DNA from: Guillardia theta CCMP2712
Taxonomy: Eukaryota; Protista; Cryptophyta
Direction of reading: 5' to 3'
DNA: 64,000 nt
NCBI RefSeq assembly: GCF_000315625.1
Contig: NW_005434461.1
Coordinates: forward strand, 5,196-69,195
Shown here: piece by piece, positions 654 through 64,000 of the stretch
How the letters are laid out: every line of letters starts with the position of its first letter
Position numbering within the stretch: the stretch's first letter is position 1
Program-made: the position numbers and the translations under genes
Notes under the pieces: model-generated
Databases searched by the model: none
What the model was told of the DNA's origin: nothing
What the model saw: only the letters and a program-made list of their open reading frames with translations

Positions 654-2286
654 ATGAGTGTCGTAACTTATTTCAAGGTCCATATTATCAATGTGACAGC
701 TACCAACATCTTCAACAAGAAGGTATTCTGAGAGAAATGCGAGTGTGCGGAAGACAGGGGAGGGAGAGGGAGAGGGAGAGGGAGATGGAGATGGACGTGA
801 AGCGAGCAAGAGCTGAGTGAAGGGAGGGCTTCAAAGCTGAACTTGCCTCCTCAGGGGAAGGTTCCAGACGCATACTTGAAGCTGGCATGGGACAAGGAGT
901 TCAAGACAGTGGAGACAGAGACGGGGAAGGTAGACGGGAGCGGCAGGACGAGCTGGGAGAAAACGTTTGGGAAGGGAGGCCTGAACTTCAAGTACGAGAC
1001 CAAGTACGCTGGTCAACTGATGAGCAAGAGGTTTGTGATAGAGTGCTGGGACAAGAACTTCTTCTCCGACGAGTTCATCGGGAAGGCTGAGCTCGACCTG
1101 CACACCATGGCCACAGGGCCAAGGAGGGTCAAGATGGTGATCAAGAAGCCTGACGGGATGCCGGGGGGGAACTTAGACGTGCTTGCCAACGTGATGCACA
1201 CTACGTACGTGAAGATCGAGCTCGCAGACGTGCAGGTCGACCTGAGGATGAAGGAGAGCTTCAGCATGCAGTACTTCTGCAGCCTGACCAGCACGCGGGC
1301 CAAGACGACAGCATCCCACATGCCCCCGCCTATGAGGTGGAAGAGACTAGAGGATATCACCATCTTCGCGTCCTTGGAGGAGCTGTGCGAGAGCTTCGTG
1401 GTGTTTGAGTTCTCCATTGAGGGGGTTGTGCATGCGGTGGGGCAGGTGGCTCTTGTTAGGATCCTGGCGGGGATAGAGGAGTACAGCGAGAGCGTGCAGT
1501 ACCCGTTCACGGAGGCGGTGAGGGACTTCGGGGAGAGCAGGGGGCAGCGGGTGGTTGGGAGCATCTCGGGGAAGATTGTGCTCAGCAACCTTCCTTTCTT
1601 CTCCCAGCTGACGGAGGATGCGATGCTTGACGATGCTGGGAACGTGGTGGGAGGGCTCAGACTACTTCCTTTCTCGCCTCTCCCGGCTGTGCTGAGCAAG
1701 AGCGGAGCGAGGGTCGTTGCGCGCTTCAGCAAGGAGAGGTTGCGGAAGAAGGAGGAGAAGAAAGAGGAGAGAGATGAAGATATCCTTGCTAAAGGTAAAA
1801 GTCGACCTGCTGCTCTGAGAGATTTTCTCGTGATTTCGTTTTCGGATTCTCGTGATTTCGTCGATCCGTACTTGTTCTGTGCCTGCTGTGCCTGTTACAC
1901 TTGTACCTTGCGCTCGGTGCTTGTGAGGTGGTACATGTTGATTGTAATCTTGTACATCGTGTCTTCTTCACCTTTGACCTGTGCTTGTACCCCTTACCTT
2001 GTATCGAAGTACCTTGCTCACCATGTACAACATACATGTAACAGCGTGCCTTGTGTCTTTTGTCTTTACTCTGATCTTGTTCGGTTGTTCGGTGAACTTG
2101 TTAGCAGAGGTGAGCGCTATCGGAATCGATGGGTGGAACCCGCATCATTCGCCTGATGAGACAGTAGGCGAGTCCCTGCTCGACCGAGCCAACTCGGCAC
2201 ATGGAAGCGAGAGGGGGGACAACAGCAACACTCATGACAGCAACACGTTCAACAGCAGCAGCAACAACAACAACAACAACAATACT

Positions 2287-2331
<45 letters not shown>

Positions 2332-4250
2332 CTCATGACAGCAACACGTACAACAACACTTACAACAACAACAACAATGGAGACAACGGAGACAACACGT
2401 ACCTCGTCCATGGATACAACACCCATAACAGTGATGCTGCGCCCCAATGGAATCAACAAGTGACAAATCCTCATGGAGTCATGCCAGGTGAAATTTGATT
2501 GTGTTCCTCCTCAAACTAAACTCCCTCCCTCCCCTCCCTCCCCTCCCCTCCCCTCCCTCCCTCCCTCCNNNNNNNNNNNNNNNNNNNNNNNNNNNNNNNN
2601 NNNNNNNNNNNNNNNNNNNNNNNNNNNNNNNNNNNNNNNNNNNNNNNNNNNNNNNNNNNNNNNNNNNNCCTCCCTCCCTCCCTCCCTCCCTCGATCCATC
2701 TCGTTGTTCCTCCAATTCCCTCTTCTGACGTCTTGGCAGTCTACGATGCTCCTCCCGCCGCGTTCAGGCAGGTCAGCGAGGAGGCCGGAGGCTGCAGTAG
2801 ACGATTTCTCTCACAGGCCGTGCAGGACGACCTGTCAAACCTTGTCAGCTTCACTCCCAACATGCACCATGAGCACAACATGAGGTAGAGGAGAGAGGAG
2901 AGGAGGAGGAGGGAGAAGAGGGGGAACAAGAGTGGGAGGACAGGAGGAGGGTGGGGGCGAGGATAGGGAGGAGGAGGGAGAAGAGGAGGAGGGAGACGAG
3001 GAGGAGGGCAAGGGAGGGGGAGGGGGAGGAAGGGGAGGGAGAGGGAGAGGAAGCAGCGACTGATCCATGCACGCCAGCAGGAGCGAGGTGAAGGTTGATG
3101 GGTTTGACGTCGGCAATGCAAGCAACGTGAGAGTTTGTGCTGGGGTGTGAAGGAGGAGGGAGGTGAAGCTGATGGGGAGGAAATGCTAGGAGGAGGAAGC
3201 GGAACTAAGCTGAACAGGAGGGAGGGGAGGATAGAAGGTCAATAGGAGGAGAGCAGGAGAATAGAATGCCAAGGAGATGATGGAAGGAGGAGAGGTGAGG
3301 AGGAGGAAGTGAACTTGTTTCAGGTATTTAATCCTCGACAAGACACACCTAACTCGAACCTCGTCTCCGCCCTTGGTCACCATCCTTACTTCCCCTCTCC
3401 CCTACGTTGCTTGCCCCCTTCCCGTGTCACCCTCCTCTTCCTCTGGCGTCCTCTCCTCTCCTCTCCTCCTCTTCTCTTCTCTCTTCCTCCTCACCTCATC
3501 CTCCTTCTCCCTCCCCTTCTCTCATCCTCCATCGTCGAGTCCTCGGCTCACTCGTATCAGGTCAAGTTCTCCCTACTTGGCGGGTCTGCTACGATGCAGG
3601 GGGGAGAAGGTGAGCGGACCGAGGGGAAGGAGAAGTGCAAGAAGGGAAGAAAAGAGGAAGGAGAGGAAGGGAGAGGAGTCGATGCAGAGTAGGGCAGGGC
3701 AGGGAGGAAGAAAAGCGGATAGGAGGGGAGGGAAGGGGAGGAAGGAGCCATCCGGAGGTTGAACAAGAGAGGAAAATGGTGCGATTTTGAGACGAGGACG
3801 AAGAAGCAAGAGAATGAGAAAGCAGGGGGAGGAAAAGAAAGAGAAGGCGGGAGCAGGAGGAGGGAGCAGGAGCAGGAGCAGGAGTAGCCGGACTAACTCT
3901 GAATCAGATTTTCGTCAACGATGTCACGCGAGTGACGACTTGGGAATATCCGACTGCTGCTCGTCTCCCTGCTGGTAGAGAACGTGACTGGAGGAATGAG
4001 GAGGGAGGGCGAGAAAGAAGAGGAGGAGGGGAAAAGGGAAGAGGAGGAGGCAGGGGGAAGAGGAGGAGGGAGAAGGACGAGGAGGGGGAGGGGGAAGGAC
4101 GAGGAAGGGGGGGGAGGAAGGACGACGACGAAGATGAAGGAGGACGATGTCAAGTAGAGGAGTGACATTGTGAATAATTCAGGTTGGGAAGAGAAGACAG
4201 ATACCGCGAATCGAGTCTACTACGTGAATCACATGACTAGAACAACACAA
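654..4250 (+). CDS. C2-domain protein with C-terminal tandem WW domains (multi-exon; 3' end unresolved near the N gap)
   Basis: Exon 654-722 (MSVVTYFKVHIINVTATNIFNKK) splices via GT723..AG854 in frame to GKVPDAYLKL...VIECWDKNFFSDEFIGKAELDL, a C2 signature. Later exons give IFVNDVTRVTTWEYP (3908-3973), which joins to GWEEKTDTANRVYYVNHMTRTTQ (4182-4250), both WW motifs. The middle exons are uncertain. Confidence 0.75.
2264..2330. repeat. (CAA)n microsatellite
   Basis: Direct observation. Confidence 0.95.
2569..2668. other. Assembly gap (100 N)
   Basis: Run of N flanked by CCCT low-complexity sequence. Confidence 1.
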
Positions 4251-4449
4251 GTCAGCTCCTTCCTCCATGTTCTCCTCCTCCTCCCCTTCTTCCCTTCTTT
4301 GCTCCCTCCTTCTCCTCCCTCTCTCCCTCCTTCTCCTCCCTCTCCCCCTCCTTCTTCTCCTCCCTCTCTCCCTCCTTCTTCTCCTCTCTCTCCCCCTCCT
4401 TCTTCTCCTCCCTCTCTCCCTCCTTCTTCTCCTCCCTCTCTCCCTCCTT

Positions 4450-4549
4450 NNNNNNNNNNNNNNNNNNNNNNNNNNNNNNNNNNNNNNNNNNNNNNNNNNN
4501 NNNNNNNNNNNNNNNNNNNNNNNNNNNNNNNNNNNNNNNNNNNNNNNNN
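4450..4549. other. Assembly gap (100 N)
   Basis: Run of N after a CT-rich minisatellite. Confidence 1.
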
Positions 4550-4907
4550 TCCTCCTGCTCCTCCTTTGTTTGCATCAGATCAGTCTGAGAGATTGATGCC
4601 CTTCTCCCTAGCATACTTCCTTACTTCCTCCTGCCATGAGTGTGAGGAGGAGGAGGCGGCGGGAAGGGGGTGCAGCGAAAGGACGAGACAAGTAGGTAGA
4701 GGACAAGAGGAAAGAAAACAGGACAGGACCAGAGGAAGGGAGTGGGGGGAGGTAAACGACAAGTTGCAGCTGCTGCTAGGGCCTTACTACAGGGAAGAGA
4801 GGAAGGACGGGGAGCGGAAGGAAAGGAAGGGGAGGAGGAGGAGGAGGAGGAGGAGGGGGCAGAAGGGAGAAGGGAGGAGGGAGAAGGGAGGGAGGAGTAG
4901 TGGGATA

Positions 4908-7900
4908 TCATGTGACCTTGTTGAGCTGGACCAGGGAAGGCAGGAGGAAGTCGCTCACGGCCCTGGCACATCTCGCTCCTGCTCTCAACGCGCCGTTGAT
5001 GGAAGCGGTTTCAACGTGATCCCCGGCGAGGAAAAGATGCTCCTTCCTCCTGACGCTCTGCCGGCGCTCTCTCTCAGCCTCAAGGCAAGGAGGAGAAGAG
5101 AAGAGAGAGGAAGCAAGGAAGAGGAGTGGAGAGGAAGCAAGGAGGAGGGAGAGGAGAGGAGAGGAGAGGAGAGGAGAGGAGGAGGCGAGGAGGAGGAGGA
5201 GGAGCGATGAAGGGCAAGGAGAATGGGAGAGTGGAAAGAGAAAGGATGACAGAGAAGGAGAAGGCAGGAAAAGAGAGGAAGGAGGCGGAGCAGAGAGAAG
5301 AGGAGGAAGGAGAGAGAAGAAGAGAGGGAATGAAGTTGAAAAGGAAGAGGATGAAGAGGAGGAGGTACCTGCTCGCGTTCGAACGGAGGTTCCTGTGACG
5401 GCTGCAGAGAGATGAGAATGAAGAAGAGGAAGAGAGGGGAAAGAAAAAGGCGGCGAGGAGAGGCCAGGAGGAGGAGGAGGAGGAGGAAGAGAGAAAAGAG
5501 AAAACGAGAAGAAGAAAGGAGAGCGATAAGGAGGAGGGGAAGGGGAGGGGGGAGCGACGGGAGGGATGAAATTAGAGGAGAAACCTGACTGAAGGGAATA
5601 CGATACGTTCGCAACGGCTTCCACTGCAATGACAAATTAAAGCAAGAACTGATGAGGAGGATGGGGACAAGGGAGGAGGAGGAGGAGGAGGAGGAGGAGG
5701 ATAAAAATTAAGAAGCAAAGAAGGGAATGATGGAGGTAGCGGAGAAGAGGAGGAGGAAGATGAAGGAGAAGAAGGCGAACGAGGAGGAGGAGCAGGTGGA
5801 GCAGGATGAACCTCGTTGGCAGAAGGACCGAACCAGCTGACGAGCTGCTTCTTGACCTGAGGATGGAAAGTCAGGGCGACATCGCAGAAGTGAGAGGAGA
5901 AGAGACGAGAGAAGCTTCTGTGATGTGCCATCGGTAGGGCAAGAAGAGTTGATGAGGAGAGGAGAGAGGGGTAAGAGAGGAGGAGGAAGAGAGAGGAGGA
6001 CGAGGAGGACGAGGAGGGCGAGAGCAGGACGAGGAGGACGAGGAGGACGAGGAGGACGAGGAGGACGAGGAGGACGAGGAGGACGAGGAGATATTCGGGT
6101 TCATACGTCTGCTACAAGTTGATCTTCTTGCTGATCGGGAATGCCGACGAGAGAAACGCATGCAAGAGACTGCAAAGAAGATGAGAGGAGGAGAGAAGAG
6201 AGAGGAAGAGAGAGCAAAGGAAGGAAGAGAGAGCAAGAGCAGAGTAGAGCCGAGAGAAAGAGCGAGGAGGAGGAGGCGAACGACAACGGTAGGGGGGCAG
6301 GAAACATCAAACTGTCAGACAACTCCCCATCAATGCAACGCAAGGCAAGAAACATTCAACGTGGGTTCGCATGACATGTGCTTGTGTCAGGTTCTTCCTT
6401 TCCTCACCTTTCCCTCTGGCGCATACGAAGAAGCGACCATGCTCGGGAAGCAGACGTTGTTGATAGTGGAGGTGCCTTGGGCGTCCTTGACGCCATCGCC
6501 GTTGAGGAAGACTGTCTGTTTTTCTCGTTCAAACGTCTCCTCGCCCTCTTCTGCTTTCCATCCCCGATTCTCTTCCTCCCCTCCCCTCCATCCCTCCATC
6601 CCTCCATCCCTCCATCCCTCCATCCCTCCGTCCCTCCATCCTCCTCCTCCTACCGGAACGTCAGCAGGCGGTTTGCCGTCAATCGCGAAGTAGAGACAAG
6701 TTGTTTTCTTGGGCTCCTGCATCTCCGACACTGAAAGGGAGAAAACAAGAGAAATCAGAAATGAGATGAAAAAGATTCAGACAACTTGCTAGTATACAAG
6801 TATCATCATCGTAACCACCATCTCAACCATCTACATCTTCATCTTCTGAACACTGTTGCGTTCTCCTTCTATCTCCTCCTATCTCCTCCTATCTCCTCCT
6901 ATCTCCTCCTATCTCCTCCTATCTCCTCCTCTTCTTACCGACGTCAGGAACAAGCTGACTTGCCATCTTTCCGCACGTTGCAACAACAACACACGACGCC
7001 TGATCGCCACGTTATTTCCTCCCTCCCCTTCTCTTTCTCAGCTCACAGCAACAAACTCTCCCGAGCTGAGGGTAACACCCTTGCCGTCTTCCTTGATTGA
7101 CTTCACCTGAGACATCATAAGTCATCGTCTCTCCTTGCCGTCCTAGTACCACTACTACTACTACTACGACGACGACCACTGTGCTACTGCTACTACTACT
7201 GTGCTACTACTACTACAACTACTACTGTGCTACTACTACTACTGTGCTACTACTGTGCTACTACTACTACTGTGCTACTACTACTACTACTACTACTACT
7301 ACGGTGCTACTACTTCTACTACTACTGTGCTACTACTACTACTGTTGCTGCTCCACCTGTTTGTTCTGCTCCACCTGTTTCTCCTCGTCCTCCTCCTCCT
7401 GATCTTCCTCCTCCTCCTGATCTTCCTGCTCCTCCTGATCTTCCTCCTCCTCCTCTTCCATCCATTTCTCAACTCCCCCTCACATACTCGAATGTTCACC
7501 GCCTTGTACTTGTCCATCACAATATCCACTTCATCTCTACTTCTCTTGCTTTGCCCTTCCTCCCACCAACCTGAGTGTTGAGTCGAACAGAGTCTGCAGG
7601 CAGCAGAGACTTCAAATAGTTTGGAATTTTCTGCATCCCCTCCTGCCATGATCGTCAATCCCTCTCCTCCTCCTCCTCCTCTCCTCGCAACTCCTCCTCC
7701 TCGCTCATCCTCGCTCATCCTCGCTCCTATATCCTCGTCCTCCTGCTCCTCTTTCACCTCTGGTAGACAATTTTCTCCTATTGAAAGCATGCGGATGACA
7801 AATTCAAACTCCCTGCAAGCCCAATCACCATCTCAAACATCATCACCACCACCTCCTCCCGCTTACCGAGCGCTGGTCTTCAGCTTCGTGTCAAAAAAGA

Positions 7901-47899: not shown

Positions 47900-50800
47900 C
47901 TAGAAGAGCTTCAGGTGGCTCGCCATGTCCCTGCGTCAAAGTCAATAGCAAATCAGCAAACGAGTCAACTGAGTCACGAGGACGCACCAAGGGACGAAGA
48001 GCTTCTTCTTCTCGTCGTAGATGTAGCAGAAGGCGTCTCCAGCCAACGCGCACGCGTCGACGTAGCTACACACCCACACCTCGAGCTCGCGTCTGACCAT
48101 GAGCTGTCCGAGGCCTCCCATCTTGAAGGTGCTGTTATGAGTATCGAGGCTCGGAACGATGTCTTTCCAGGTGTGAAGCATCTGACAGTGAAGGTACTTG
48201 CTGCTCACAAACCAGTACTGCGACAGCGCGTTGCTCGAGATGTTTGCAGTCCACGTCATCGTGAAACCCTGATACGCCACGCTCTCGTCCGCCTCGAACA
48301 CAACCTCCAGCACCCGCGAGCTCGCCGTCACCGTCAGGCTGCCGGGCTTGTGCAGGCCCGTGAGCTTGGCGACCTCCGTCCTCCCGTAGCACTCCAGCGA
48401 CGCTCCCAGGAGGCCGATGCACTCGTTGATCGTGAGGAAGTCGTATCCCGGCTCGAGGGCGAAGGAGGTGAAGTTGAGGGAGATGGAGGAGGCGCCTGGA
48501 GGCTGGATGATCCACCGGCAGTTGCTCCCGTCCTCGTACAGGCTTGACAGTGCCGATCCGTCGGACATGGACCCTCTCGCCTCGTCAAACAGCTGGCACC
48601 GGCACTTGCCTGTGCAGGGCTTGAGAGCTGAGCTGCAGATGCTGTCCTGCAGCTCCTGACAGGCTAGCGCGTGCTCCCCGCTGTTGCAGACAGGGGTCGA
48701 GCAAGCCCTGCAGGAGGACCCGGAGACGTACTGGCCGGGAGCACAGCGAATCTTTTTGATGAGGATGCGAGTGTTCTGACAGTACTGGCCTGATGACAGC
48801 GCGTACAGCTCAGCGTCAGCTCGGATAGACTTGGTCAAGCCGTTGAGGGCCATGACGCGACCAGCAGTCACGTAGTTGTAGTTTGACGTGGCGTAGACTG
48901 TGCCGTCGGACACCACGAGCTGCTGGAGACCCCACGGGTAGCGTGCGATGACCTCAACAGTGTCCGTGTCGTTGGGAGCTACTTGCCAGCCGGCCGGCAG
49001 CTGGACCATGCCGCACTGAAGCCTCTGGTTGGAGCTCGATAAGGGCCCTTGCAGGGGGTCCCAAGGCTCCGTCATGTTGTCCATGAGCACGGCGTACTCG
49101 TCCCCGCTGCGAGAGGTGACGGCGAAGATCCAGCCGCACTGGTAGAGCATCGCATCGGGATAGTCCTGCCTGCACGACCTCGTGATGTTGCACCGCATGG
49201 AGGCTGGCCTCACGACGACGTCGCTCTCCGGTGACGGCGGGGGCTTGCAGGCGAGGCAACGCGTGCCTGACTGGAAGTATCCCGGCTGACAGCGCCAAGC
49301 GCACTCCTCGTCAGCGGCGTCGAGGAAGTAGGCGAAGTTGGGAGCGTTCATGCAGGGCACACAAGCGCCTTGACTGCGATAGTGACCCGTGCCGCATCGC
49401 CACTGGCAGACCTGACCGCTCGACCCGTCGGCTTCCACATAGAGAGCGTTGCTTGGCTTGGGATACCTCGGGTCGCACGACGCGCATCCCTCATACGCCT
49501 TGTAGTATCCTGCCCGACAGGTCCATCCGCACCCGCCTGGTCCCGAGGAGGCTACCGCGTTGGCCGGTAGGCTGCCCGAGCATGGCGTGCAGTCTTGATC
49601 GCCTCGGCCCACGTAGCCGTCATCACACTCTAGGCGCACAAGCAGCATCCGCAGGGCGTAGTATCCGTTGTCGCAGGACGAGAGGGCGTAGGAGTTGCCG
49701 CTGCTGTAGAGCATGTTGCTGAAGATGCGGGTGCCGGGCGTTTGGTAGCTCATGTAGTCCTGGTAAGGCTGCGCCGTCTGGTAAGCGACTCCGTTGGCGA
49801 GCACGATGGCTCGAGCTCCCCATGGGTACGACCCGACGACTCTCACAGCTTCCTCGCTCCATGGCGCCAGCGTCCAGCCCGCAGGAGGCTGCTGGTACCT
49901 GGAGCCGTCATGCTGGCAGCTGAGGTTGAGCGACGTGGGAGCGACGTCGTCGAAGGCTGCGTAGACCTTGCCGAGGTACCTCACCACGTGCGTCAAGCTG
50001 TTACTGACGTTACACGCCTCTCCATGGCTCTCGCCGCTCGCGCAGGCCCACTGGCATGAGTTGGGCTGGTCCAGCAGGCCCGGGGTAGAGTAGAAGGCGT
50101 AGGGGGGGATGGGGTTCGTGCAGGGGAAGCACACCATCCACTCGGAGCTCCGGTAGAAGCCGGCATTGCACTCCCAGGGACACTTGCTGTCCGCATATTG
50201 GCTGGGGCTGGAAGGAAGAGCATAGCTGGCGTTGGCAGGGATGGGGTTGGAGCAGGGGTAGCAGTAAGAGCCGGAGAGGTAGAACCCGGGAGCACAGAAG
50301 AGCGACATGAGAAGAATGTCGCTGCACGTGTTCCAAGATCGATACATACCGTCATATCCGATCAGTGAGTTGGATCCCCATCTATATGGGTAGTTACAGC
50401 ATTGACAGCTGCTGGTGTACCAGATAGAGCTGTCGGATAGCTGGAGGTAACATACTCCCCACCGCTGAGTCGCGATCGCCATCTGACTGTCCCAGGTGTT
50501 CGCAGCTATCGCCCAGCCGTCAGGGATGCTGCTGAAGGTCAATGGTGTGTTGCACTGGTAAGGTTCGTCAGGCCGGTGGCCTTGTAGGGTGGTGTAGTAT
50601 CGGTTGCCGTACTGGAACATCTCGCACTTGCTGGCGTTGACATTGCTCCCTCCCCCCTGAGATTGATAGTGACCGAAGTCACACGCCCAGCCGCATGCCG
50701 TCCCGTTGCTGCCCTCCCGCAGCCAGTGAGCCGCCCGCGGCTTCCTGCCCTCGCACGCGACGCACTGACCGTCCTTGAGGAGGTAGCCCGCGCTGCATCG

Positions 50801-53800
50801 CCACCCGCACTCTGTCCACGACCCGTTGACCCCTCCCGGCCCGTACGCTACGTACTCCGCGTGCTCCGGCGCCGTCTCGCACGCCTGACACGCCTCGCCT
50901 CGTCGCGTGTAGCCGGGCTCGCAGGCCCACGGGCAGACGCTGTCGGCGTAGCGGCTGGGGTCCTGCTGGGCGACGTAGAGGGCATGAGGGGGGATGGGGT
51001 TAGAGCAGTTGCCGCAGCTCGAGTCGTTACGGAGGTAGTAGCCCGCCGCGCAGTACTGCGACACGAGCAGGATCGACCCGCACGATTCTGACGACCTGTA
51101 CATGCCGTCGTATGACACCAGCGAGTAGCAGCAGGTAGACTGAGGCGACGACGACGAATAACACCGAGAGCTGTACCAGGTAGTGCTGTCAGACATCATT
51201 AGGGTGCAGGAGCGCCAAGGGTACATCCACGCTGTCATGCGGCTGTCCCAGGTGTTCGCAGCTATCGCCCAGCCTGCCGGGATCGCCTTCAGCCCTTGAT
51301 TGCAGTTGTAGTAGTAGTAGTAGTAGTCACTATTTTCCCAGTTCCATGGGGGAGAGCCGTCGAGGGCGGCGTAGTATCGGTTGCCGTACGAGCGCAGCGG
51401 CAGACAGTCTCCGTCTGCCGACGCGAAGTAGCCGAAGTCGCACGCCCAGCCGCATGCCGTCCCGCTGCTGCCCTCCCGCAGCCAGTGAGCCGCCCGCGGC
51501 TTCCTGTCCTCGCACGCGACGCACTGACCGTCCTTGAGGAGGTAGCCCGCGCTGCATCGCCATTGGCACTCGTACTCGATTTCGTGTCTCATCGTCAACT
51601 GGACATACTCAGCATGGGCTGGCAGCGTCGCTCGGTCACAAGCTACACAATGATCGGCTTGCTGCTTGTAGCCGGCGTTACACACATATGCACAGGTGGA
51701 GATGAGCTGGTTGTCTGCTGCTATAAGACTGCCATATGACGAGTTGGCAGGCAGCGCGTTACTGCAGGGCACACAGCTTGAGCCGCTCTTGAGATATCCC
51801 GGGGCACATTCAGTAGACCTCAGCAGAACTCCCTTGTCACAACCATTTGCCTTGTACATGCCGTTGTAGGAGCTCAGATATCCCCAGCAGCATTGCTGCG
51901 GACTGGTAGAGCTAGTGCTGCGAGCTGTGTACCACAGAGAGCCATCTGAAAACACCAAGTAGTTCGATCCCCAGGTGAAGTACCAAGTGACGTACTGACT
52001 GTCTTGGTCGTTGGGGGCGAGCTCCCATCCTGCCGGTACCGGCAAGTACGGATCGTCACGGCAGGTGTAGGGGTCGTTGGGAGCTCTGCCGCTCAGAGTC
52101 GTGTAGTATCTTCCGGCGTACTTGGTCCCGACGCACCTTCCGTTGCTCCTCACATACCCGAACCGACATGACCACTCGCACTGCCTCCCGCTGACTTCGC
52201 CTGCTGTGAAGTAGGCGAACTCTGGCAGACTCGTCTCGCAGGCTTTGCATGCCCCGTCTTGGAGGTAGTAGCCTGCATGGCACGTCCAGCTGCAGCTCTC
52301 TCCGGGCTCGCTCGTGGTGTACACAGCATTGGGAGGGGCTACCGAGCAGGCGACACAAGAGCTCCCGTAAGCATCCCTGTAATAGCCGGCGTCGCATCGC
52401 CAGTCGCAATTGTTCTTGTTTGCAGGCGAGCCGCTGCTGTTGTAGGTGGCGTGATTAGGCTTGTAGCTGCTGCACGGAATGCAGCGGGTCATGTTGGAGG
52501 GATCCCTGTAGTAGCCCGCGAGACAGTCCTCTGCTACCACCAGCACCGTCCCACAGCTGTCTCTTGACACGAACATCCCGTCGTAGCTGTACAGTCGCGA
52601 CGTACAGCACATGCCTCCGTATCCTGTGTTCCATGCCGTCCCGTCCTCCAGCACGACATTGCTGGCCCCCCACGGGTACTGAGATACCACAGAGATGCTG
52701 TCGCCTGTGTTGGGCGCTATCATCCACCCCTCCGGCAGAGCTCTCGCTACCTCCCAGCTGCAGGTCGAGCTGTCGTAGGGAGCCCTCCCTCCCAAGCTCG
52801 CATAGCGCTGTCCGTTGTATCCTACGGTGATGTCGTCGCAAGAGCTGCTCCCGCTCTGACGATAACCAAAGTCGCACGCCCACGAGCAGCCTGACCCCTC
52901 CCAGTGAGCATTGGGAGGCAGCGAAGACGCGCAGGCCTCGCATCGCCATCCGTCGACCTCGCGGTAGCCCGGCAAGCAGCTCCAAGCACAGCTGTCTGCC
53001 TTGCCCATCAGCCCGCCGCCCACGTAGACGGCAGCAGAAGGCTTGCCCGCACACTTGGAGCACGTCGAGCCTGACGGGTAGAAGCCAACCTGACAGCTCC
53101 ACCCGCAGCTGCTCGCCTCCTGAGGGTAGGGCGAGAGCACGTACTGTGCGCCGGAAGGGATGGTGTTGGAGCATGGGACACAGCGAGACGCGTTCGTCGA
53201 TCCGCTTGCAGAGGCTGCAGGAGCGACGGCCATGTAGCCCGATGCGCATACGGGAGCGAGGAGCAGAACTCGAGCTTCGCAATCTGACGAGCGATAGTAA
53301 ACTCTGTCATACGTCGAGAGATAGCCGCTACTGTAGTACGAGCCCGGGTATTGCCAGTAGTACCAATACCAATAATACCAGTTATCTCCTGACATGACGC
53401 TGTTGGTGAAGTAGCTCGAGCTGCTGTCCAGCACAAGCCGAAGAGCTCCCCAGTCGTACTTGGCGGTGACGTTGATGCTGATCTCGTTGTCCGGAGCGAT
53501 CGACCAGCCCGCAGGCAGCGGCAGGTACTCCTGCCATTCCGACACACAGCTCCACATGGAGTACTGCGACGTAGGACCGTACCCGCCAAGAGTCGAGAAC
53601 ACGTACCCCTCCTCTTCCACTACCTCCTGCCAGGCACAGGAGTCCGCCCCCTCCCCGCGCCCTGCCGACACAAACACAGCGTTGGCCGGCCTCTTGGTGC
53701 AGGGCATGCACATGCTCCCTGACTTGTAGAAGCCAACGTCGCACGTCCACCCGCAGAGCTCGTTGGAGTAGCTGGCGTTGCTGGGCTTCCCTTCGCACTC

Positions 53801-55400
53801 AGCGCAGCTCTCGCCTTTGAGGTGGAACCCGGGTTGGCATATCCAATCGCACGACTGCGATGCCGTAGAGAAGTCGGAGGAGTAGATGGAGTTGGGAGGG
53901 ATGGAGTTGTTGCACAGCACGCACGGCAAGTCAAGCATCACATACGGCGACGGCACACCAGAGACAAGCAGACGAGCCTCACGGTCGGGCATGGAGAAAG
54001 ACGTCAAAGTTGACCCCCTGCCGTCGCTCATCATGTACATGGTCGAGAAGTAGGTGTTCTGCAAGCCGATTGCGACCCGCAAGGTGTTGTTGGCAAAGAA
54101 AGTCACCTCGAAGATGAGATTCGGATGCCCCGGGAGCCCCGAGGTAGACGAGGTCCCCTCGAACCTCACCACGTATCCCCGCATGTCTCCCTCCCTGGTG
54201 GGGGTCCCGACGATCAGCTGGGCTGAAGTGTCTCCAGCTCCGACAAACAGAGTCGGGACGTAAGGATTGCTGGCTGACAGGGAGGTGTAGGTCGACCAGG
54301 CTTGTCCGAAGGTCAGGTAGCTATTGGACGATATGTACACCGATGATTGCACGTTGTTGCCTCCCACGCAGAAGGGAAACCCAAGGTCCGGCACTCTCCA
54401 GCTCCCGTCATCGACAGAGCTTGGCGAGAGGATGTAGGACCAATTTCTTCCTACCGCCAGGTCTGACTTGAGGTAGGACGTGTTGAGGATCGTCGCATTC
54501 GGAGGGCCTTGGAAGTGCGCAGGCGCTGGGTCGGCAGTCGCGGAGTCTCGATACCTCGTGGAGCAGAAGTCTGGGGTCTGACCTTGCGGGCATCCCACGT
54601 ACACGATCAGTATCCGCATGTTGCAAGACGCCGGCCAGTACAAGCCGTCGCTGCTGCGTAGAGAGGAGCCTCCATTGGAGCAATACCAGCAGTTTGTGCG
54701 ATAGTATGAGCCGCTTTCGACCAACATGTAATCGGTTCCCCAAGTGTACTGACTGATGACTTCTCTCGATAGCCAGTCATCCGGAGCGATGGCCCAGCCC
54801 TTCGGCAGCCGCAAGGCTTGTGTCTGGCAGTCTTCGTTGCTGCTTGTCCTCTCCGACATGTAGTATGTGCCGTCGAGGGTGGCAAACTTTCTGCCGCCGT
54901 ACATGACGCTAGGAAGATCGTCTCCGCGCCGCTCTCCATCATCCTCGGATATCTGATAAATGTAAGGTCAGCAGCTGATGCTTCAGAGATCGTCATGTTA
55001 CCACGGAGTTGTCGCGGAGCGAGTACTTGCTGTCCGCAGATCCCACAGATCGCTGGAGGTCGACATGAAGCGCTCTCAAGTGCGCATTTGATGATGCAAG
55101 CGAAGTAGAAACTCCTTTGCGATGAGCTCGATCGCCTTGACTCATCGGGCGCAGCTTGTCAGAAGCCGGCATCTTGCTTGAAGAGGAGCGCAGCTGACGG
55201 TCAAGAGAGTCCTCCTGAGCGATCAATTGCTGGATCTCCATCAGGCGTGAGGTGATGGGGGACGAGGCAGATCTCTGAGAGGGGCTGGTAGGCTGTTGAT
55301 GCAGAGCATCGTCTCCTGTGGCTGAAACAGAAGCAGAGACAGAGAAAACAAGAAGGAAAGCGAAAACAATCCCAAGACTCATCAGGCTGATGCGAGCCAT
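47900..55400 (-). CDS. Large secreted Cys/Tyr/Trp-rich mosaic protein (8x unassigned module, Cys-rich repeats, NIDO-like segment, CUB domain)
   Basis: Signal-peptide exon (MARISLMSLGIVFAFLLVFSVSASVSA) joins by a phase-0 intron at 55001-54953 to the 2320-aa ORF. It has repeated CxWxCxAGYY..CxxC units, LGFPFCVGG..SVYISSNSYLTFG (NIDO-like), and YEDGSNCRWIIQPP..LNFTSFALEPGYDFLTI..VFEADESVAYQGF (CUB). Confidence 0.9.
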
Positions 55401-56347
55401 GTCGCGAGAAAATTGAGACTGGAAGAAGAGATCGGTCAGAACACAATATATTTGCAGGGCTTTAAAAGCACGATTAAGTCACAAGATAGTGAGAATGGTC
55501 GAGTGTTGGCAAGGTTTGCAGTCAAAGAGCTATGATTGCACTGCGAAACATCGGACTAGAGCTGAGATATTCGAAGGGGACAACATGAAGTGAGGAGAGG
55601 ATGATTCATTTCTAGAGCGATTGAGGAGGAGAGCAAGGAAAGGAAGCATTTGGAGGGCACAGGAGAGCAGAAGCCGGGCAAGGCCATGGCCATGGGGAGC
55701 GGGAGGGATCAAGAGGATAAGTGCCAGCGATCAAATAAAGGATACTAGTCGTCTTTGAGTAAAGGAGTGAGTCGTCCACCCCCTTTCCTCTCGAGTTCTG
55801 CGTGACTACCCCGACCCTAATTGACTTAGGAAGTACCCCTCCCGTCGAAAGGCAATTAGTCAGCTACACACCCCTGTGATTAATGACCCACCCTAGCAAC
55901 GCAGACACGCCCGTGATCTTCTCTTCGACCACCGGTCCTGATGTCAACTTTGGTACTCGAGCAGTTGTGGAGCTAGTTGAATGTTCCCTCTTTCCACCCC
56001 ACCCTGCCCTACCGTACCCTGCCCTACCGTGCCGTACCCACCACCTCAACCGAAAATTGATTTTAGTTCCCCTACCCCTCCTCATGATGCTCAACTCACT
56101 TCTATTTGACATCCCTCTTGCTACGTCTCGTGGGCATACCCCTACTATGCCCTCCCACCCTACCCCTGTCTCTCGCTTAATTGCCCATTACTGAGATTCC
56201 ATGGGGTCGTGACCCTTGTCAGAGTCTTGTCAGTGACCCCCGGCCCATTTTAGAACAGTGTCCTCTGAGTCACTGAAACTCCGGCAGCCCCGGGCCCGGG
56301 CTGACTCCGGCAGCCCCGGACTTCGGCGGATCAGAGAGATCGGGCTC

Positions 56348-58459
56348 ATGGCGGGGGTAGAGGTCGCGCGGGCGGGAGGATATGAGCAGGGGGAGATGAT
56401 GGACTGGGAGGACGGGAACAGACGTTGTCTCGTCAGGTAGACTGATGTTCCTCCTCCTGTATCCCCTCCCATGTCTGCGCTCTCTGGCTCTTTCTCTCTT
56501 TCCCACTTGCTTGTCCTCCTCGGACTGCTGTTTGACGCTTGATCCTGGTAAGGTTTCGCCATGGCGAGGAGACATGCTGGATCAATGACAGTTTGATCCG
56601 TCTGATACCCGAAGAGCATGATCGCGCTGGGTTCAGTCCGTCTCCCGGGGATGTTGTCGAGGCAGCGTTGCCCGACGAGAATGGGAACTTGAGGTACTGG
56701 TGGGAAGGAGTAGTGAACGAGGCAAAAGGAAATTTCTTTGTCGTCGAGTTTCCCCATGAGCGACACTCGAAGAAGAAGGAAGTGGTAGAATTGGATCATC
56801 TCAGGCCAACTTACGGACACCCTACGTTGTGCATCGAAAAGAAGATGATCGAATTTCCTCCGAACATGCAAGCCTCCAATGAAAGAGTTGAGAAGTTCCT
56901 TGATTCCAAACTCAAGAACGTCATCGGCATTGTAAGCATGCATTGCTTTCTTCCTCCAATCCTTTATTAACTCTCCATTTCTAGAGAGGACTGATGACGT
57001 CGAAGCTGGATGTTGAGAACAGACATTTATGCTTGATAGGAACGGTTGTGACTCTGACCTTGCCTTGACGATTTCATATTGACTTCCCTATAGCTTCCTG
57101 CAGTGGAGGTTGCCTCAAATCTCGTGGATATAATCTTCACACAAGTATGCTGAAGATGAGACAAGTGGAACTCGATCTGACAGTCTTTCGAGGCCATACA
57201 CATGAATCTCGTGAACAATGCGCAGAAGAATACAGTGAGTAGCTTCCTGATTGTACATCGTTTGAAGTGAAGGTGTGAACAGGAATTTATCAACGTGGAG
57301 AAGAAATATGGTGACCTCGACTTTGCAGTTGCTCTTCGCTGGCTCTGACAAAGGTTGGCAGCATGCGTGAGCTTCCAAGTTGATCCCAGGTACCTGGGGC
57401 TCGTGATCGGACCCCAAGGAAGAAACTTGAAACCAGCCAAGGAGATTCAAGGTGAAACAAGTCGGATTGCTCTGCTCATTGTAATGAATGCGCGTGAAGG
57501 CATTCAGAGCATCGATGTGTATGCCAACGGACTTGTCAACATCTACGGGGACAATCAGAATGTGTGAATCTTATAGCACTGCTGCTATCTCGGTCTTGGT
57601 CTTTCCTGACACTCCTCTGCTTCATACCAGGTGGTGGAAGAAGCTCGGAAGGAGCTGGAGCTGGTGACAGAGAAGTAGGTCGGGTTTGAGAGTTGGAGTG
57701 ATGTTGATCGATGTGCTCGAAGCATTCCAATCCATCGGAATCAAGTTGGGCTGATCATAGGGAAGGGAGGATCCCAGGTAAGGAAAAGTTCTCCTTTGGA
57801 TTGAAGAATGTCGATGTGAGGTTGAGATTGTTAGATCATTGAGCTGCAAAAGTTTTCGTCCTCTCGAATGGTCGTCAAGCAGGTTGGACGATCAGCGAAT
57901 ATCCTTGTGTGGGAAATTTTGTTTTATCTTGTTTGCAGGTGGAGGATACTGAAGAAGCATATTACATCCAAATGTTTGGAACTCGGCATTCAATAGAGAC
58001 GGGGCAGGTGATTTTTCATCGCTTTCAAGCTGCGATAAGGTCAGCTGACGCTATCTTAGGCGCTTGTCAAATATTTGATCTCAACTTTCCAAGAGAAAGA
58101 GGAGAAGCAGGTCATTGATTGAAGCTTTCAGACTCTTCTCTCCTCTTCTCTACTGCCTCTTCCATTCCTCTCTCCTTCACCCGTCTCTCCTCTTTTCTCT
58201 TCTCCTTCTCTCCCTCCCTTTTCCCTCTCTCCCTCTGTCTGTTTTGCTTCGCTCCCTCCATCTTCATTTGCTCTTGCCCCCTTTCAATCCCGCTTGTTTC
58301 CTCGTCTCTGAGTGATTCTCCCCTTTCCAGGCTTTGATATCGAATCTTTCCGACGAGCTGAGAACCATGTCCCATCGCAAGCTCAGACCTGGACGGAGGA
58401 GGCAGGAGGGCGTCAATGATGTCGCAAGTTCCCAACAGAACCTTACGCCTTCAACTCAA

Positions 58460-58497
<38 letters not shown>

Positions 58498-59030
58498 CCA
58501 GCAACAGCACCAGCACCAGCACCAGCACCAGCACCAGCACCAGCACCAGCAGCAGAACTCAACAGAAATCTTTCAAGATGTGCAGGACCCAGCCGAGCTC
58601 AGGAAAATGGAGTCAACAGTTATTGCCAGCCACAAACCAGCGGCAGCAGAACCTGTTCCTTCCCAGCGAAGAAGAGTGAGTGAAGAAGAGAACGGTTGGA
58701 GAAGTACTGACGAGATTTCAGAGGAGAGATACGTCAGCTACGGAAGACAGCACTTCTTCGAACTCCTCTCCCTTCCTCTCCGACCATGCTCGGCTCGAAA
58801 CGTGGGGCGCTAGTACACATCAACCGCTCGCCTCTTCCAATTTCTCGACCCCCAGCACCAACGACTCGGACAAAAAGTCGATGGAGGGAGCGACGTCGAG
58901 GCTGGTGAGCTCGGGGAGGGACGAGCTCCTGCTAGGGCTCCAGCTCTTCCAGGAGGGTCAACGGAAGGCTGCAATGCAGGGACAGCAGGAGGGGCAGGAG
59001 CGTCGAGGTAAGGGAGGAAGAGTTCTCTGA
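56348..59030 (+). CDS. FMRP/FXR-like RNA-binding protein (tandem Agenet/Tudor + KH0 + KH1 + KH2), poly-Q/QH tail
   Basis: Agenet2: GDVVEAAL..WWEGVVNEAKGNFFVVEF..EVVELDHLRP. KH1: FQVDPRYLGLVIGPQGRNLKPAKEIQGIQSIDV..VNIYGDNQNVVEEARKELE. KH2: IPIHRNQVGLIIGKGGSQIIEL. Exons were joined by hand; the 3' end is approximate. Confidence 0.85.
58459..58555 (+). repeat. Coding (CAG CAA)n/(CAG CAC)n repeat encoding poly-Q then (QH)n
   Basis: Direct observation. Confidence 0.9.
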
Positions 59031-59339
59031 AGTTGCTGAGCCCTGGCAGGTCCTTACCATGTCGGGGAGGAGAAGGAGAGAGCAGCAGATGTGCGGGACT
59101 GGAGGTTCAGAGGGCGAGGACGACCTTCTCGTAAGCCTCGCAAGTAGCGGGACGAATGAAACGACTGAAATGAGGAGACCGATGTCTCTCGCTTGCTTCT
59201 CCCCGCATCTGAGTTTTGTTTCTTTGCTGCCCAGTAGACATGGCAAGAGTCCTTCTTGCATTGTGGGGGATGAGTTGAAGTCTAATCTAGGATTGATCAT
59301 GGTCTACAGAGAAGAGTCCTTTCAAGCAGCTTTTGATCG

Positions 59340-62300
59340 CTAACTGTCGTACCGACGTGTTGCTGCAGCTTCTTTCAAGGTTTTCTTCTAAATCTACATG
59401 TTTCTTTCAGCTTCGGCCGATAGATCTGCGATTGTTCTCACCAACACCGAGATACGCGACTGCAGTGATGAAAATTCAGATGATTTCACTTTGAATGGCA
59501 ACGGCAAACCTGCATATCAGCGCGGACATGTCGTTCTTTGTTGATCTTCCATGTCTTGAAAGCATTCATCAACAAGTTAACTGAGTTCAAAGCTTTCTTC
59601 TGCCGACAACTTCAACAGAGCGTGTGTTGCAGCAAAAAAACAAAGTCTTACCTGATACTCGCTGGGAATGTCCATCCTACATGTTTTCAAGGCAGTGTTG
59701 AGAACCAACGTCGGAGACTTCTCAATTGTCTTGCTCCGTAACAGCTCCCTCTCTCTCCTCAGTTTCTTCACCATCCACGTGTTGAACGCATGATTGATCA
59801 GGAGCTGGTCCTGCATGATCCGGGCGAAGAACTTGAGCCGTTGCTCCCTGCTGAAAGACGTCCACTTGTCCAAGGCTGTCCTGAGCAGCAGAGCTCGTCG
59901 TTGTGGTGCTGATAGAATCTCCGCCAAGTTCTCTACGGTCTGTCGGATGGACCTGGTCTTGATGGTGATCCCTTGGAGCCGCAGAAAAGCGCGGAGGAGG
60001 GTTTCAATGCGATCGAAGCAAACTCTCCTCTGCCGCACATCTCTTCCTCGCCTCCGCAGCTCGCACCTGTCGGCGAAGCGGCTGAAGTTCCTACGCTTGT
60101 CTTGCAGGACCCATCTTGACAAGAAGAACGTCGACAACTTGTCTCTTACATACTCCACCTGTCGGTCGTGCATCAGCAGGATGGTAGACCTTGACCTCAG
60201 CTCCCGCCATGAGCGTATGATCTGCCATACAACAAACTCTTGATTGACCCGCATGGCAGCCTTCAACTTGCGCCTTACGTGTAGCGACATTCTTGACAGC
60301 ATGTTCACTTCGTATCGGAAAGCCATGAAGGCCTTTCGGAGTAACAGTTGCTCCACTGCCACCTCCCGCACTCTTTCACCGATCCTCCGCACTCGCACAG
60401 AGAACACTTTGACGTAGAACAAAGTAAATGCAAATCTTAGAATCAACCTGCGGCATGTCCGGTAGTGCTCAACCTTACTTTGTTCCCACTGCTTCTTGAG
60501 TTGTATTTCTCTGTCCCTCTTCTTGGTGATGGCAAGGAAGCTAGAAGACTGTAAACTCAAAAGGATCTTGCTCGTTTCTTTTTCCAACAATCCCATTTGC
60601 AATCCACCTTCAATCACAACGAATTTGTTGCAGTGCAAGATCTCGAGTCTGCTGGTTTGTAATTCTTTAGAGAGATTGTTATCGACAACAAACTCTTGTG
60701 TTTCATCCTTTCTATGCACAAAAACAATAAGATTGTGCAAGTCCTCTGGAAACATTAGAACATTCACCATGTGTTTCGGCAGCTTCAGAAAAGAAGAGAT
60801 CCTCTCCTCTAATGTTCCGGTTAGTGAGGCATCGAAGGCAGAGATTGGAGGATCAAGTTTGCAATTCAGACAGATTGCTGAGGTAAGTTTCCGAGACCAA
60901 CCCTCATGACGACTGATGACACCTTGCAACTGAAAGATTTCTTCCTTCAAAACTTGAAACCGATTCTGATAAATCGATTCCTCATGCCATGATGTCCATC
61001 GATTGAAAGCTGAATACAGCGAGTGTTGATGCCATTTAGATTGAATGAGACGACAAACCTGCCACTCCCCATAGCTGCGAAAGCAAAAAACCTTCAACAT
61101 GTCAAAGAAGTATTTTTTGAGCTTGACACAAAATGTTCGAACAGCAATATGAAAGAACAAACGACGAGCCCGATAAAGCAGAAAGTTATTCAGAAAAGCA
61201 TTCAACACAAAAACAAGTGTTCGTTTGATTGATAGCTGAGCAAGGAAGTGCGATTGCTCCCATTCCTTACGTGACTCAGCCACGCCCTCTACCAGCCGCC
61301 GGAAAGCCTCGGCCGTGTGCCCCTGTATCCTCCGTGCTACGCTCTGTCGGGCCAGCTCCTCGAGCCTCTCCGTCCGATGACCCAGCTTGGCGCTCAGCTC
61401 CGAGCAAGCTTGCTCGAGCCCTCCTACACGTCTGGCCGCCCTCCCTGTCTCGGCATGGCCCAGCCACAGGTCGAAACCCTGGCTGAGCGCCCAAGCTCGG
61501 CGCCGCGCCTCCAGCCTGTCAGCCAGCAGGCACATCCTCCTCCTCCGTACTGCCGCGGCTCTCCAGGTCGCGAAGCTTGCTGCCTGCGTCCTATGCAGCC
61601 AGCGGCCCAGCACCCGACCGCACAGCTCGCGAGCTCGCTTCCGCCACGTCACCAGGTCCAAGTAAAAGTCGAAGGCTGCTGCCAGACGCGCGTGTATCAT
61701 GCGGCGGAGCACTCGCTCGCATAGAGCAAGCTGACGCCTGTCGCGCTGAGCTTGACGGAGCCTCTCGGATCTTGCCTTGTCGGCTTCTTCTGCCCACTTG
61801 TCGTATGCCCGCGACGCCAGCCCGGCCTGCCAGCGCTTGACGGCCCTCGTGCAAGCTTGTCTCCTGACGCGTGCGGCGGATGTCGCTGACCGCCAGCGCT
61901 CCAGCCCCTGCGACAGGTCTCTGCATCGCATCTTGCCCAAGGCCTTCCGGCAGATCTGACGCGCTCGCCGAGCCCGGCCCGTAGCCGACCTCAGCCCCTC
62001 GAACGCCGCTCGCGTCTCGTCGCTCGCGGCTTGACGATCCAGGCGAGCGTGCAACGACTGCTTGAGCGCGTCAAGGTGCTGAGCAAGCTCCTCGCTCCGC
62101 CTCTGCTCGCTCTGGAGCTGGCCCTCGAGCCGGCTGACCTCGCGGTCTTGATCCCGCAAGGCTCGATGCTCCGACACGGCGTCAGCGAAGGCTTCGAAGG
62201 CTCTCCCGAGACCCGTCAGCTCCCGTCTCGTCTGCGCGCGTCGGTCCAGCGCTCGACGCCTCCGTGACTCAGCCACGCCCTCTACCAGCCGCCGGAAAGC

Positions 62301-64000
62301 CTCGGCCGTGTGCCCCTGTATCCTCCGTGCTACGCTCTGTCGGGCCAGCTCCTCGAGCCTCTCCGTCCGATGACCCAGCTTGGCGCTCAGCTCCGAGCAA
62401 GCTTGCTCGAGCCCTCCTACACGTCTGGCCGCCCTCCCTGTCTCGGCATGGCCCAGCCACAGGTCGAAACCCTGGCTGAGCGCCCAAGCTCGGCGCCGCG
62501 CCTCCAGCCTGTCAGCCAGCAGGCACATCCTCCTCCTCCGTACCGCCGCGGCTCTCCAGGTCGCGAAGCTTGCTGCCTGCGTCCTATGCAGCCAGCGGCC
62601 CAGCACCCGACCGCACAGCTCGCGAGCTCGCTTCCGCCACGTCACCAGGTCCAAGTAAAAGTCGAAGGCTGCTGCCAGACGCGCGTGTATCATGCGGCGG
62701 AGCACTCGCTCGCATAGAGCAAGCTGACGCCTGTCGCGCTGAGCTTGACGGAGCCTCTCGGATCTTGCCTTGTCGGCTTCTTCTGCCCACTTGTCGTATG
62801 CCCGCGACGCCAGCCCGGCCTGCCAGCGCTTGACGGCCCTCGTGCAAGCTTGTCTCCTGACGCGTGCGGCGGATGTCGCTGACCGCCAGCGCTCCAGCCC
62901 CTGCGACAGGTCTCTGCATCGCATCTTGCCCAAGGCCTTCCGGCAGATCTGACGCGCTCGCCGAGCCCGGCCCGTAGCCGACCTCAGCCCCTCGAACGCC
63001 GCTCGCGTCTCGTCGCTCGCGGCTTGACGATCCAGGCGAGCGTGCAACGACTGCTTGAGCGCGTCAAGGTGCTGAGCAAGCTCCTCGCTCCGCCTCTGCT
63101 CGCTCTGGAGCTGGCCCTCGAGCCGGCTGACCTCGCGGTCTTGATCCCGCAAGGCTCGATGCTCCGACACGGCGTCAGCGAAGGCTTCGAAGGCTCTCCC
63201 GAGACCCGTCAGCTCCCGTCTCGTCTGCGCGCGTCGGTCCAGCGCTCGACGCCTCCGTGACTCAGCCACGCCCTCTACCAGCCGCCGGAAAGCCTCGGCC
63301 GTGTGCCCCTGTATCCTCCGTGCTACGCTCTGTCGGGCCAGCTCCTCGAGCCTCTCCGTCCGATGACCCAGCTTGGCGCTCAGCTCCGAGCAAGCTTGCT
63401 CGAGCCCTCCTACACGTCTGGCCGCCCTCCCTGTCTCGGCATGGCCCAGCCACAGGTCGAAACCCTGGCTGAGCGCCCAAGCTCGGCGCCGCGCCTCCAG
63501 CCTGTCAGCCAGCAGGCACATCCTCCTCCTCCGTACCGCCGCGGCTCTCCAGGTCGCGAAGCTTGCTGCCTGCGTCCTATGCAGCCAGCGGCCCAGCACC
63601 CGACCGCACAGCTCGCGAGCTCGCTTCCGCCACGTCACCAGGTCCAAGTAAAAGTCGAAGGCTGCTGCCAGACGCGCGTGTATCATGCGGCGGAGCACTC
63701 GCTCGCATAGAGCAAGCTGACGCCTGTCGCGCTGAGCTTGACGGAGCCTCTCGGATCTTGCCTTGTCGGCTTCTTCTGCCCACTTGTCGTATGCCCGCGA
63801 CGCCAGCCCGGCCTGCCAGCGCTTGACGGCCCTCGTGCAAGCTTGTCTCCTGACGCGTGCGGCGGATGTCGCTGACCGCCAGCGCTCCAGCCCCTGCGAC
63901 AGGTCTCTGCATCGCATCTTGCCCAAGGCCTTCCGGCAGATCTGACGCGCTCGCCGAGCCCGGCCCGTAGCCGACCTCAGCCCCTCGAACAGGCATATTC
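59340..64000 (-). CDS. Sfi1-like (putative centrin-binding) long helical repeat protein; 5' end beyond the window
   Basis: ORF of at least 1449 aa with L..(A/G)(F/L/Y)..W motifs, many ~33 aa apart (LSQGLERW, LASRAYDKW, QAASFATW, LSQGFDLW, LYSAFNRW, LRTALDKW, INHAFNTW). A further exon reads LLMNAFKTWK. Confidence 0.7.
61270..63990. repeat. Near-perfect in-frame 993-bp tandem repeat (2.7 copies, 331 aa each)
   Basis: Identical ORF sets recur at a 993-bp offset (61276/62269/63262). Only one substitution was seen (t at 61551 vs c in later copies). Confidence 0.97.

Follow-up and report, generated by a model that had tools for sequence, protein, structure and literature searches.

A probable divergent FMRP/FXR-family gene with an Agenet-Agenet-KH0-KH1-KH2 product in the cryptophyte Guillardia theta

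Gene model and domain order

The window analysed here is the whole 64,000-nucleotide (nt) stretch of contig NW_005434461.1 of Guillardia theta CCMP2712 (contig positions 5,196 to 69,195), and coordinates below are those of the window. On its plus strand, in eukaryotic sequence of ~50% G+C without long open reading frames (ORFs), lies a gene that a preliminary description, made from the letters alone, had called fragile-X (FMRP/FXR)-like. Three-frame reading together with splice-site testing gave a gene model that runs from the ATG at 56348 to 58813 and comprises 14 exons and 13 introns, with an open product of 519 residues. The exons spliced by hand in the preliminary description were all recovered and splice cleanly; one small exon in KH0 (56985–57044) had been missed. 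All introns have GT-AG ends, and their lengths from first to last are 116, 53, 49, 39, 48, 51, 48, 69, 48, 57, 56, 52 and 220 nt, that is, 39–69 nt in 11 of the 13, the exceptions being intron 1 (116 nt) and intron 13 (220 nt). Intron 13 (58111–58330) is CT-rich and about four times as long as is usual for the gene.

From the N- to the C-terminus the product contains two Agenet/Tudor barrels, a KH0 module without a GxxG loop, a long linker helix, KH1, KH2, a predicted coiled-coil helix and a disordered tail. Both KH1 and KH2 are of type I with intact loops (GPQG and GKGG). A family hidden Markov model (HMM) was built from six relatives with the window sequence left out, and each segment of the product was compared with 200 shuffles. 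The spliced product scored 247.9 bits over residues 9–373 in a single collinear alignment. Segment scores were 15.0 bits for Agenet1, 59.0 for Agenet2, 18.4 for KH0 (residues 126–215), 56.8 for KH1, 28.9 for KH2 and 7.1 for the helix after KH2, each above all of its shuffles (shuffle maxima 0.2–3.5 bits; 1.3 for Agenet1, 0.2 for Agenet2 and 3.5 for KH0). The order of modules first proposed, that of FMRP, was borne out. Pfam Agenet matched exon 2 with 30.8 bits (cutoff 27).

Exon 1 (56348–56436) opens with the start codon and encodes the first strands of Agenet1 (MAGVEVARAGGYEQGEMMDWEDGNRRCLV, the R being split in phase 2). Its start lines up with the N-termini of relatives, and the position and phase of the following intron are common with those of a paralogue in the same genome, P0031 (GUITHDRAFT_140530). 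Exon 2 (56553–56931) holds the rest of Agenet1 (to ~56619), Agenet2 (~56620–56838; WWEGVVNEAKGNFFVVEF..EVVELDHLRP) and the first strand and helices of KH0. The KH0 beta strands follow in exon 3 (56985–57044; RGLMTSKLDVENRHLCLIGT), which can be aligned to the KH0 of the family, and the KH0 C-terminal helix in exon 4 (57094–57144; LPAVEVASNLVDIIFTQ, the human counterpart being ..KRAHMLIDMHFRS). Exon 5 (57184–57234; SFEAIHMNLVNNAQKNT) continues the long helix that links KH0 to KH1, found at residues 175–217 in a structure model of the paralogue, and exon 6 (57283–57310) adds the linker EFINVEKKY and ends in phase 1. The first half of KH1 with its intact GxxG loop is encoded by exon 7 (57362–57451; FQVDPRYLGLVIGPQGRNLKPAKEIQG), for which Pfam KH_1 gave a partial match of 17.4 bits and whose intron again agrees with the paralogue in position and phase. 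The second half of KH1 lies in exon 8 (57500–57561; IQSIDVYANGLVNIYGDNQN), and its C-terminal helix with the KH1-KH2 junction in exon 9 (57631–57674; VVEEARKELELVTE). KH2 starts in exon 10 (57723–57777; NIPIHRNQVGLIIGKGGSQ, GxxG loop intact), continues with helix 2 and a strand in exon 11 (57835–57882; IIELQKFSSSRMVVKQ) and with a short variable loop and the last strand in exon 12 (57939–58007; VEDTEEAYYIQMFGTRHSIETGQ), and its C-terminal helix runs into the predicted coiled coil in exon 13 (58060–58110; ALVKYLISTFQEKEEKQ; helix 329–365 in the paralogue model).

Exon 14 of this minimal model (58331–58813) encodes the end of the coiled coil (ALISNLSDELRTM), a basic RKLRPGRRRQ stretch, a Gln/His tract and an acidic, Ser-rich tail, with the stop codon at 58811–58813. 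The tract is a (CAA/CAG/CAC)n run at 58457–58555 that encodes 33 Gln/His residues, and it occupies the place of the disordered region that contains the Arg-Gly-Gly (RGG) box in animal FXR proteins. The preliminary description had noted a polyGln/His tail instead of an RGG box, and this stood. A good match to a donor site (GTGAGT) was observed inside exon 14 at 58676, and two possible extra 3′ exons (58722–59007 and 59050–59147) would follow introns of 46 and 42 nt. The gene may then extend to 59147 with a product of ~601 residues ending RFRGRGRPSRKPRK; these putative exons have open frames and GT-AG sites, and no homologue supports them. Short degenerate direct repeats (CCCTACCGTACCCTGCCCTACCGTGCC...) precede the start codon by about 300 nt, at 55985–56045.

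Constraint on the exons and relatives of the product

An orthologous metagenome contig (2557 nt) is 92% identical to the window over 56259–58194, and local alignments of the window took in 55700–58196 and 58237–59500. In a global alignment the exons were 95.2% identical with no gap columns, against 91.5% identity and 26 gap columns in the non-exon sequence. Differences in exons fell at codon position 3 in 35 of 52 cases, and the ratio of nonsynonymous to synonymous substitution rates (dN/dS) was 0.14 over 359 codons. The contig conserves 13 of 13 GT donors and 12 of 12 internal AG acceptors. This pattern shows purifying selection on exactly the modelled exons. An antisense ORF of 237 residues at 56230–56943 was rejected as spurious because the substitutions between the window and this contig follow the frame of the plus strand.

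Three near-full-length proteins were found among the matches to exon 2: a transcriptome protein of Hemiselmis rufescens (P0009), a transcript-assembly protein of the cercozoan Mataza sp. D1 (P0017; EukProt accession, taxid resolving to Cercozoa) and a metagenome protein (P0025). The spliced product aligned with each of them in one collinear stretch (phmmer E = 6e-53, 6e-38 and 4e-33, respectively). Collinearity with the Hemiselmis and Mataza proteins, both derived from transcripts, is indirect evidence that a single mRNA carries the Agenet and KH exons and speaks against their division between separate transcripts, the outcome on which the first proposal would have foundered. Contig runs guessed to be RNA contained 0.25–0.43 of sampled 31-mers (~0.44 is expected for a spliced transcript, by hand count), and DNA-like contig runs contained 0.57–0.91.

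A word search with the family profile added two further proteins, P0031 and P0032. P0031 is a hypothetical 'K Homology domain-containing protein' of 591 residues from G. theta CCMP2712. It is 31% identical to the window product, and 48–49% identical to the Hemiselmis protein and to another cryptophyte-type sequence. Over the first nine introns of P0031, to which the comparison was confined, three intron positions were common to the two genes with identical phases; introns at the P0031 locus measure 42–57 nt, with one of 125 nt. The two proteins have the same architecture and differ in the tail, which is RG-rich in P0031 (..PTRGRGGAV..) and not in the window copy. The reference model of GUITHDRAFT_140530 (G. 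theta JH993010.1:475147–481536, gene at 1501–4890) can be mapped exactly no further than about residue 322 and lacks ~12 KH2 residues found in all relatives; it is probably mis-spliced in KH2. The window gene was absent as an annotated protein from both protein collections searched, though the paralogue was present, and the reference annotation may lack it.

A maximum-likelihood tree was calculated for 13 protist members, without animal sequences and with an arbitrary root. The window gene falls inside a clade (support 100/99) with P0031, the Hemiselmis protein and their kin, as a long early branch of 1.36 substitutions per site. The other clade (100/99) comprises the Mataza protein, P0025, P0016 and P0032. 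P0017, P0025 and P0032 from that clade are full-length collinear homologues with 23–25% identity to the window product, and P0017 and P0025 keep FMRP-like ENNW and SYNEIV-type motifs. P0032, a Logan contig product of 627 residues, has a canonical RGG box (GPGRGGGRGRGGGGRRNGG) directly after the coiled coil; an RGG tail is therefore not confined to animal FXR proteins. P0032 also contains an insertion of ~35 residues in KH1. The identities, the placement in the tree and the shared introns make the window gene the divergent member of a pair that goes back to an old duplication in the cryptophyte-type lineage, with P0031 as the conserved member, rather than 'the' FMR1 orthologue. The earlier proposal of a true orthologue was thus too strong in that respect, although its core, a homologue of the FMRP type, was upheld.

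Relation to FMRP/FXR proteins and competing explanations

To the family profile, which for this search included the window pieces, the best match in the PDB was human FMRP KH1-KH2 (2qnd, E = 5.8e-30). FMRP 1–213 (4qw2/4qvz/4ova) matched at E ~ 3e-27 over positions 4–201, from Agenet1 through KH0, with the alignment continuing through FMRP residues 126–203 (KH0), and FMRP/FXR Tudor pairs matched at E = 1e-22 to 1e-27. The best chain outside the FXR proteins was FUBP2 (E = 1.6e-10), which covered one KH only. When full-length relatives were searched singly, FXR proteins again came top for both halves; the best PDB matches were FMRP, FXR1 and FXR2 and not TDRKH or other Tudor-KH proteins. Pfam recognised two Agenet and two KH_1 domains in relatives. 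The human FMRP strings first quoted (WWLAKVRMIKGEFYVIEY..EIVTIERLR, AHMLIDMHF and the KH1-KH2 segments) agree with the FMRP chains of the PDB.

Structure prediction led to the same proteins. An AlphaFold2 model of residues 1–375 of the paralogue (mean predicted local distance difference test score, pLDDT, 84.8) consists of two barrels, a long helix, two KH folds and a terminal helix, residues 127–217 forming the beta-alpha-alpha-beta-beta-alpha arrangement of KH0. Foldseek ranked FMRP Tudor-Tudor-KH0 (4ova) first for this model, then FMRP KH1-KH2 (2qnd), FXR1/2 Tudor pairs and plant Agenet readers. The template-modelling (TM) score was 0.70–0.73 against 4ova, over the whole 199-residue chain, and 0.62 against 2qnd. 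KH0, whose presence in models had been named as a check, is thus seen in the window protein by alignment of its segment and, as a fold, in the paralogue model. A model of exon 2 of the window gene (pLDDT 73.9) gave a five-strand barrel with a following helix, and its best Foldseek matches, though weak, were to the FMRP N-terminal domain. In the ESM Atlas, FMR1/FXR clusters came nearest.

Compared with human FMRP, FXR1 and FXR2 (4OVA, 4QVZ, 4QW2, 2QND, 3KUF and 3H8Z), the window protein shares all five structured modules, their order and their spacing, including the tandem Agenet pair and the tandem KH1-KH2 with GxxG loops characteristic of the family. A helix follows KH2 in both, and the alignment is unbroken through domains and linkers. 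The window protein differs in an identity of only ~22–25%, in the short variable loop of KH2 and in its polyGln/His tail, and its gene in the cryptophyte host and the introns of 39–69 nt. Because of the FMRP matches of the family profile and the superposition of the paralogue model on FMRP, we conclude that the window holds an intact nuclear gene for a real, divergent homologue of the FXR family, with a probability of roughly 0.8.

A number of results weigh against this conclusion. Single-sequence similarity is weak: exon 2 alone matched FXR2 and FXR1 Tudor2 in the PDB with E = 0.017 and 0.053 at best, and for the KH1 exon piece, with its 48-nt intron translated as well, the matches were to generic KH domains only. 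With exon 2 (126 residues) as the query, an exhaustive HMMER search at E ≤ 1e-3 found 30 relatives, most of them nameless, and no recognised animal FXR protein among them. Similarly, word-index searches with the family profile, P0031 and P0017 returned almost only the queries, and no animal FXR sequences. The Pfam models specific to the family, which were trained on animal sequences, were silent on the window pieces (Tudor_FRX1, KH_9 and FXMRP1_C_core). Among the relatives scanned, Tudor_FRX1 (PF18336) reached 15.9 bits on P0017 and 14.6 on P0025, below its cutoff of 25.9, and KH_9 (PF17904) and FXMRP1_C_core (PF12235) matched none. The 519-residue product lacks the RGG box of the family, and a short RGRGR occurs only in the unsupported alternative 3′ end. 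In Agenet2, KKKEVV stands where human FMRP has TYNEIV, a stretch that holds a methyl-lysine cage tyrosine, so that the ligand may be read differently. Function, finally, would have to be extrapolated from the animal proteins across the low identity given above.

The chief competing explanation is that the protein reads chromatin or R-loops, the Agenet pair recognising methylated histone tails as in plant AGDP1, ADCP1 and AGDP3 while the KH modules hold nascent RNA or single-stranded DNA. The tandem Agenet fold is indeed alike, and the paralogue model matched plant H3K9me readers with tandem Agenets (7yta, 6ie4 and 5zwx) at E = 1e-4 to 1e-3; the ESM Atlas feature search with exon 2 alone, which was not discriminating, returned generic plant Agenet clusters first. 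Papers on nuclear and chromatin roles of animal FMRP also exist. However, FXR proteins stood several orders of magnitude above the plant readers in both sequence and structure (for the latter, E = 1e-9 to 1e-11 versus 1e-4). The plant proteins, built of repeated Agenet pairs, lack KH0, KH1 and KH2, all of which are present here, and KKKEVV in place of TYNEIV does not favour a classical aromatic cage. We consider a chromatin reader unlikely.

Far less probable is that common domains were joined by chance, or that the gene encodes an unrelated Tudor-KH protein of the TDRKH/AKAP1 type which merely resembles FMRP. Agenet/Tudor and KH domains are common, and the silence of the FXR-specific Pfam models and the generic matches of single exon pieces are as this explanation would have them. 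The domain order, Agenet-Agenet-KH0-KH-KH, is, however, not that of TDRKH, which is KH-KH-Tudor with an extended Tudor domain. The TDRKH KH chain (1we8) matched at E = 1.7e-6 over KH2 alone, against 1e-27 to 1e-30 for FMRP, with which the alignment has no break across the two Agenets, KH0 and the helices between domains, with the whole of 4OVA superposing on the paralogue model. Least credible of all is the view that the gene is a copy of GUITHDRAFT_140530 in decay or without function, or that wrong splicing during hand annotation produced it as an artefact, which the long branch, the distance from the paralogue and the absence from annotated proteins might suggest, but which is opposed by the frame open across 14 exons, the low dN/dS, the intact GxxG loops, the orthologous contig with its conserved splice sites and no exon indels, and the exon-sized share of words in the RNA-like runs.

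For an FXR-family protein of this composition a mechanism can be proposed from the behaviour of KH and FXR proteins. KH1 and KH2 would bind single-stranded RNA, the helix after KH2 would serve homotypic pairing or pairing with the paralogue, and the Agenet pair together with KH0 would dock protein partners. The Gln/His tail would drive assembly into messenger ribonucleoprotein granules. The whole would act post-transcriptionally or on translation, as a regulator comparable to animal FXR proteins, with a putative role in translational control or granules; recognition of G-quadruplexes of the FMRP type is not expected, because the RGG box that mediates it is absent.

Age of the family and other features of the window

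According to one review (PMC4216185), which cites Guduric-Fuchs 2004 and, for yeast, Currie & Brown 1999, fragile-X genes originated in the common ancestor of cnidarians and bilaterians, and organisms that lack a nervous system do not have them. Another fragile-X paper speaks of invertebrates only, and in the literature searched we found no paper that describes a member of the FXR family outside animals. A homologue with the full architecture in a photosynthetic protist, under purifying selection, accompanied by a paralogue in the same genome and with relatives in another cryptophyte and a cercozoan, would place the family's origin much deeper than animals, and the family looks far older and wider than the literature assumes. 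It also provides unicellular organisms for studying what the Agenet-KH0-KH core originally did. The surprise is real but moderate, because databases already register such proteins in part: one ESM Atlas cluster is labelled 'Fmr1-b protein' by automatic annotation, and the commonest phylum recorded in it is Perkinsozoa.

A more specific scenario, for and against which we see the odds as balanced, is that the full Agenet-Agenet-KH0-KH1-KH2-coiled coil architecture, ancestrally with an RGG tail, predates animal nervous systems. An ancestor shared by Cryptista, SAR (Cercozoa and perhaps Perkinsozoa) and opisthokonts, near the last eukaryotic common ancestor, would already have had it, and many losses would have followed. 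In cryptophytes it would have been duplicated, and the window copy would have exchanged the RGG tail for a Gln/His tail of the condensate type. Such a history would amount to a natural experiment that separates the ancestral part of the FXR mechanism from later additions.

Two long ORFs lie on the minus strand elsewhere in the window. A single ORF of 2320 residues occupies 47942–54904, and the contig collection records no gene with exactly that product. At 59577–63926 an ORF of 1449 residues contains three letter-identical, Arg/Ala-rich helical units of ~330 residues each (GKMRCRDLSQGLERWRSATSAARV...), and either a genuine tandem duplication or an error of the assembly may explain these repeats. 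G+C climbs to 0.68 towards the end of the window.

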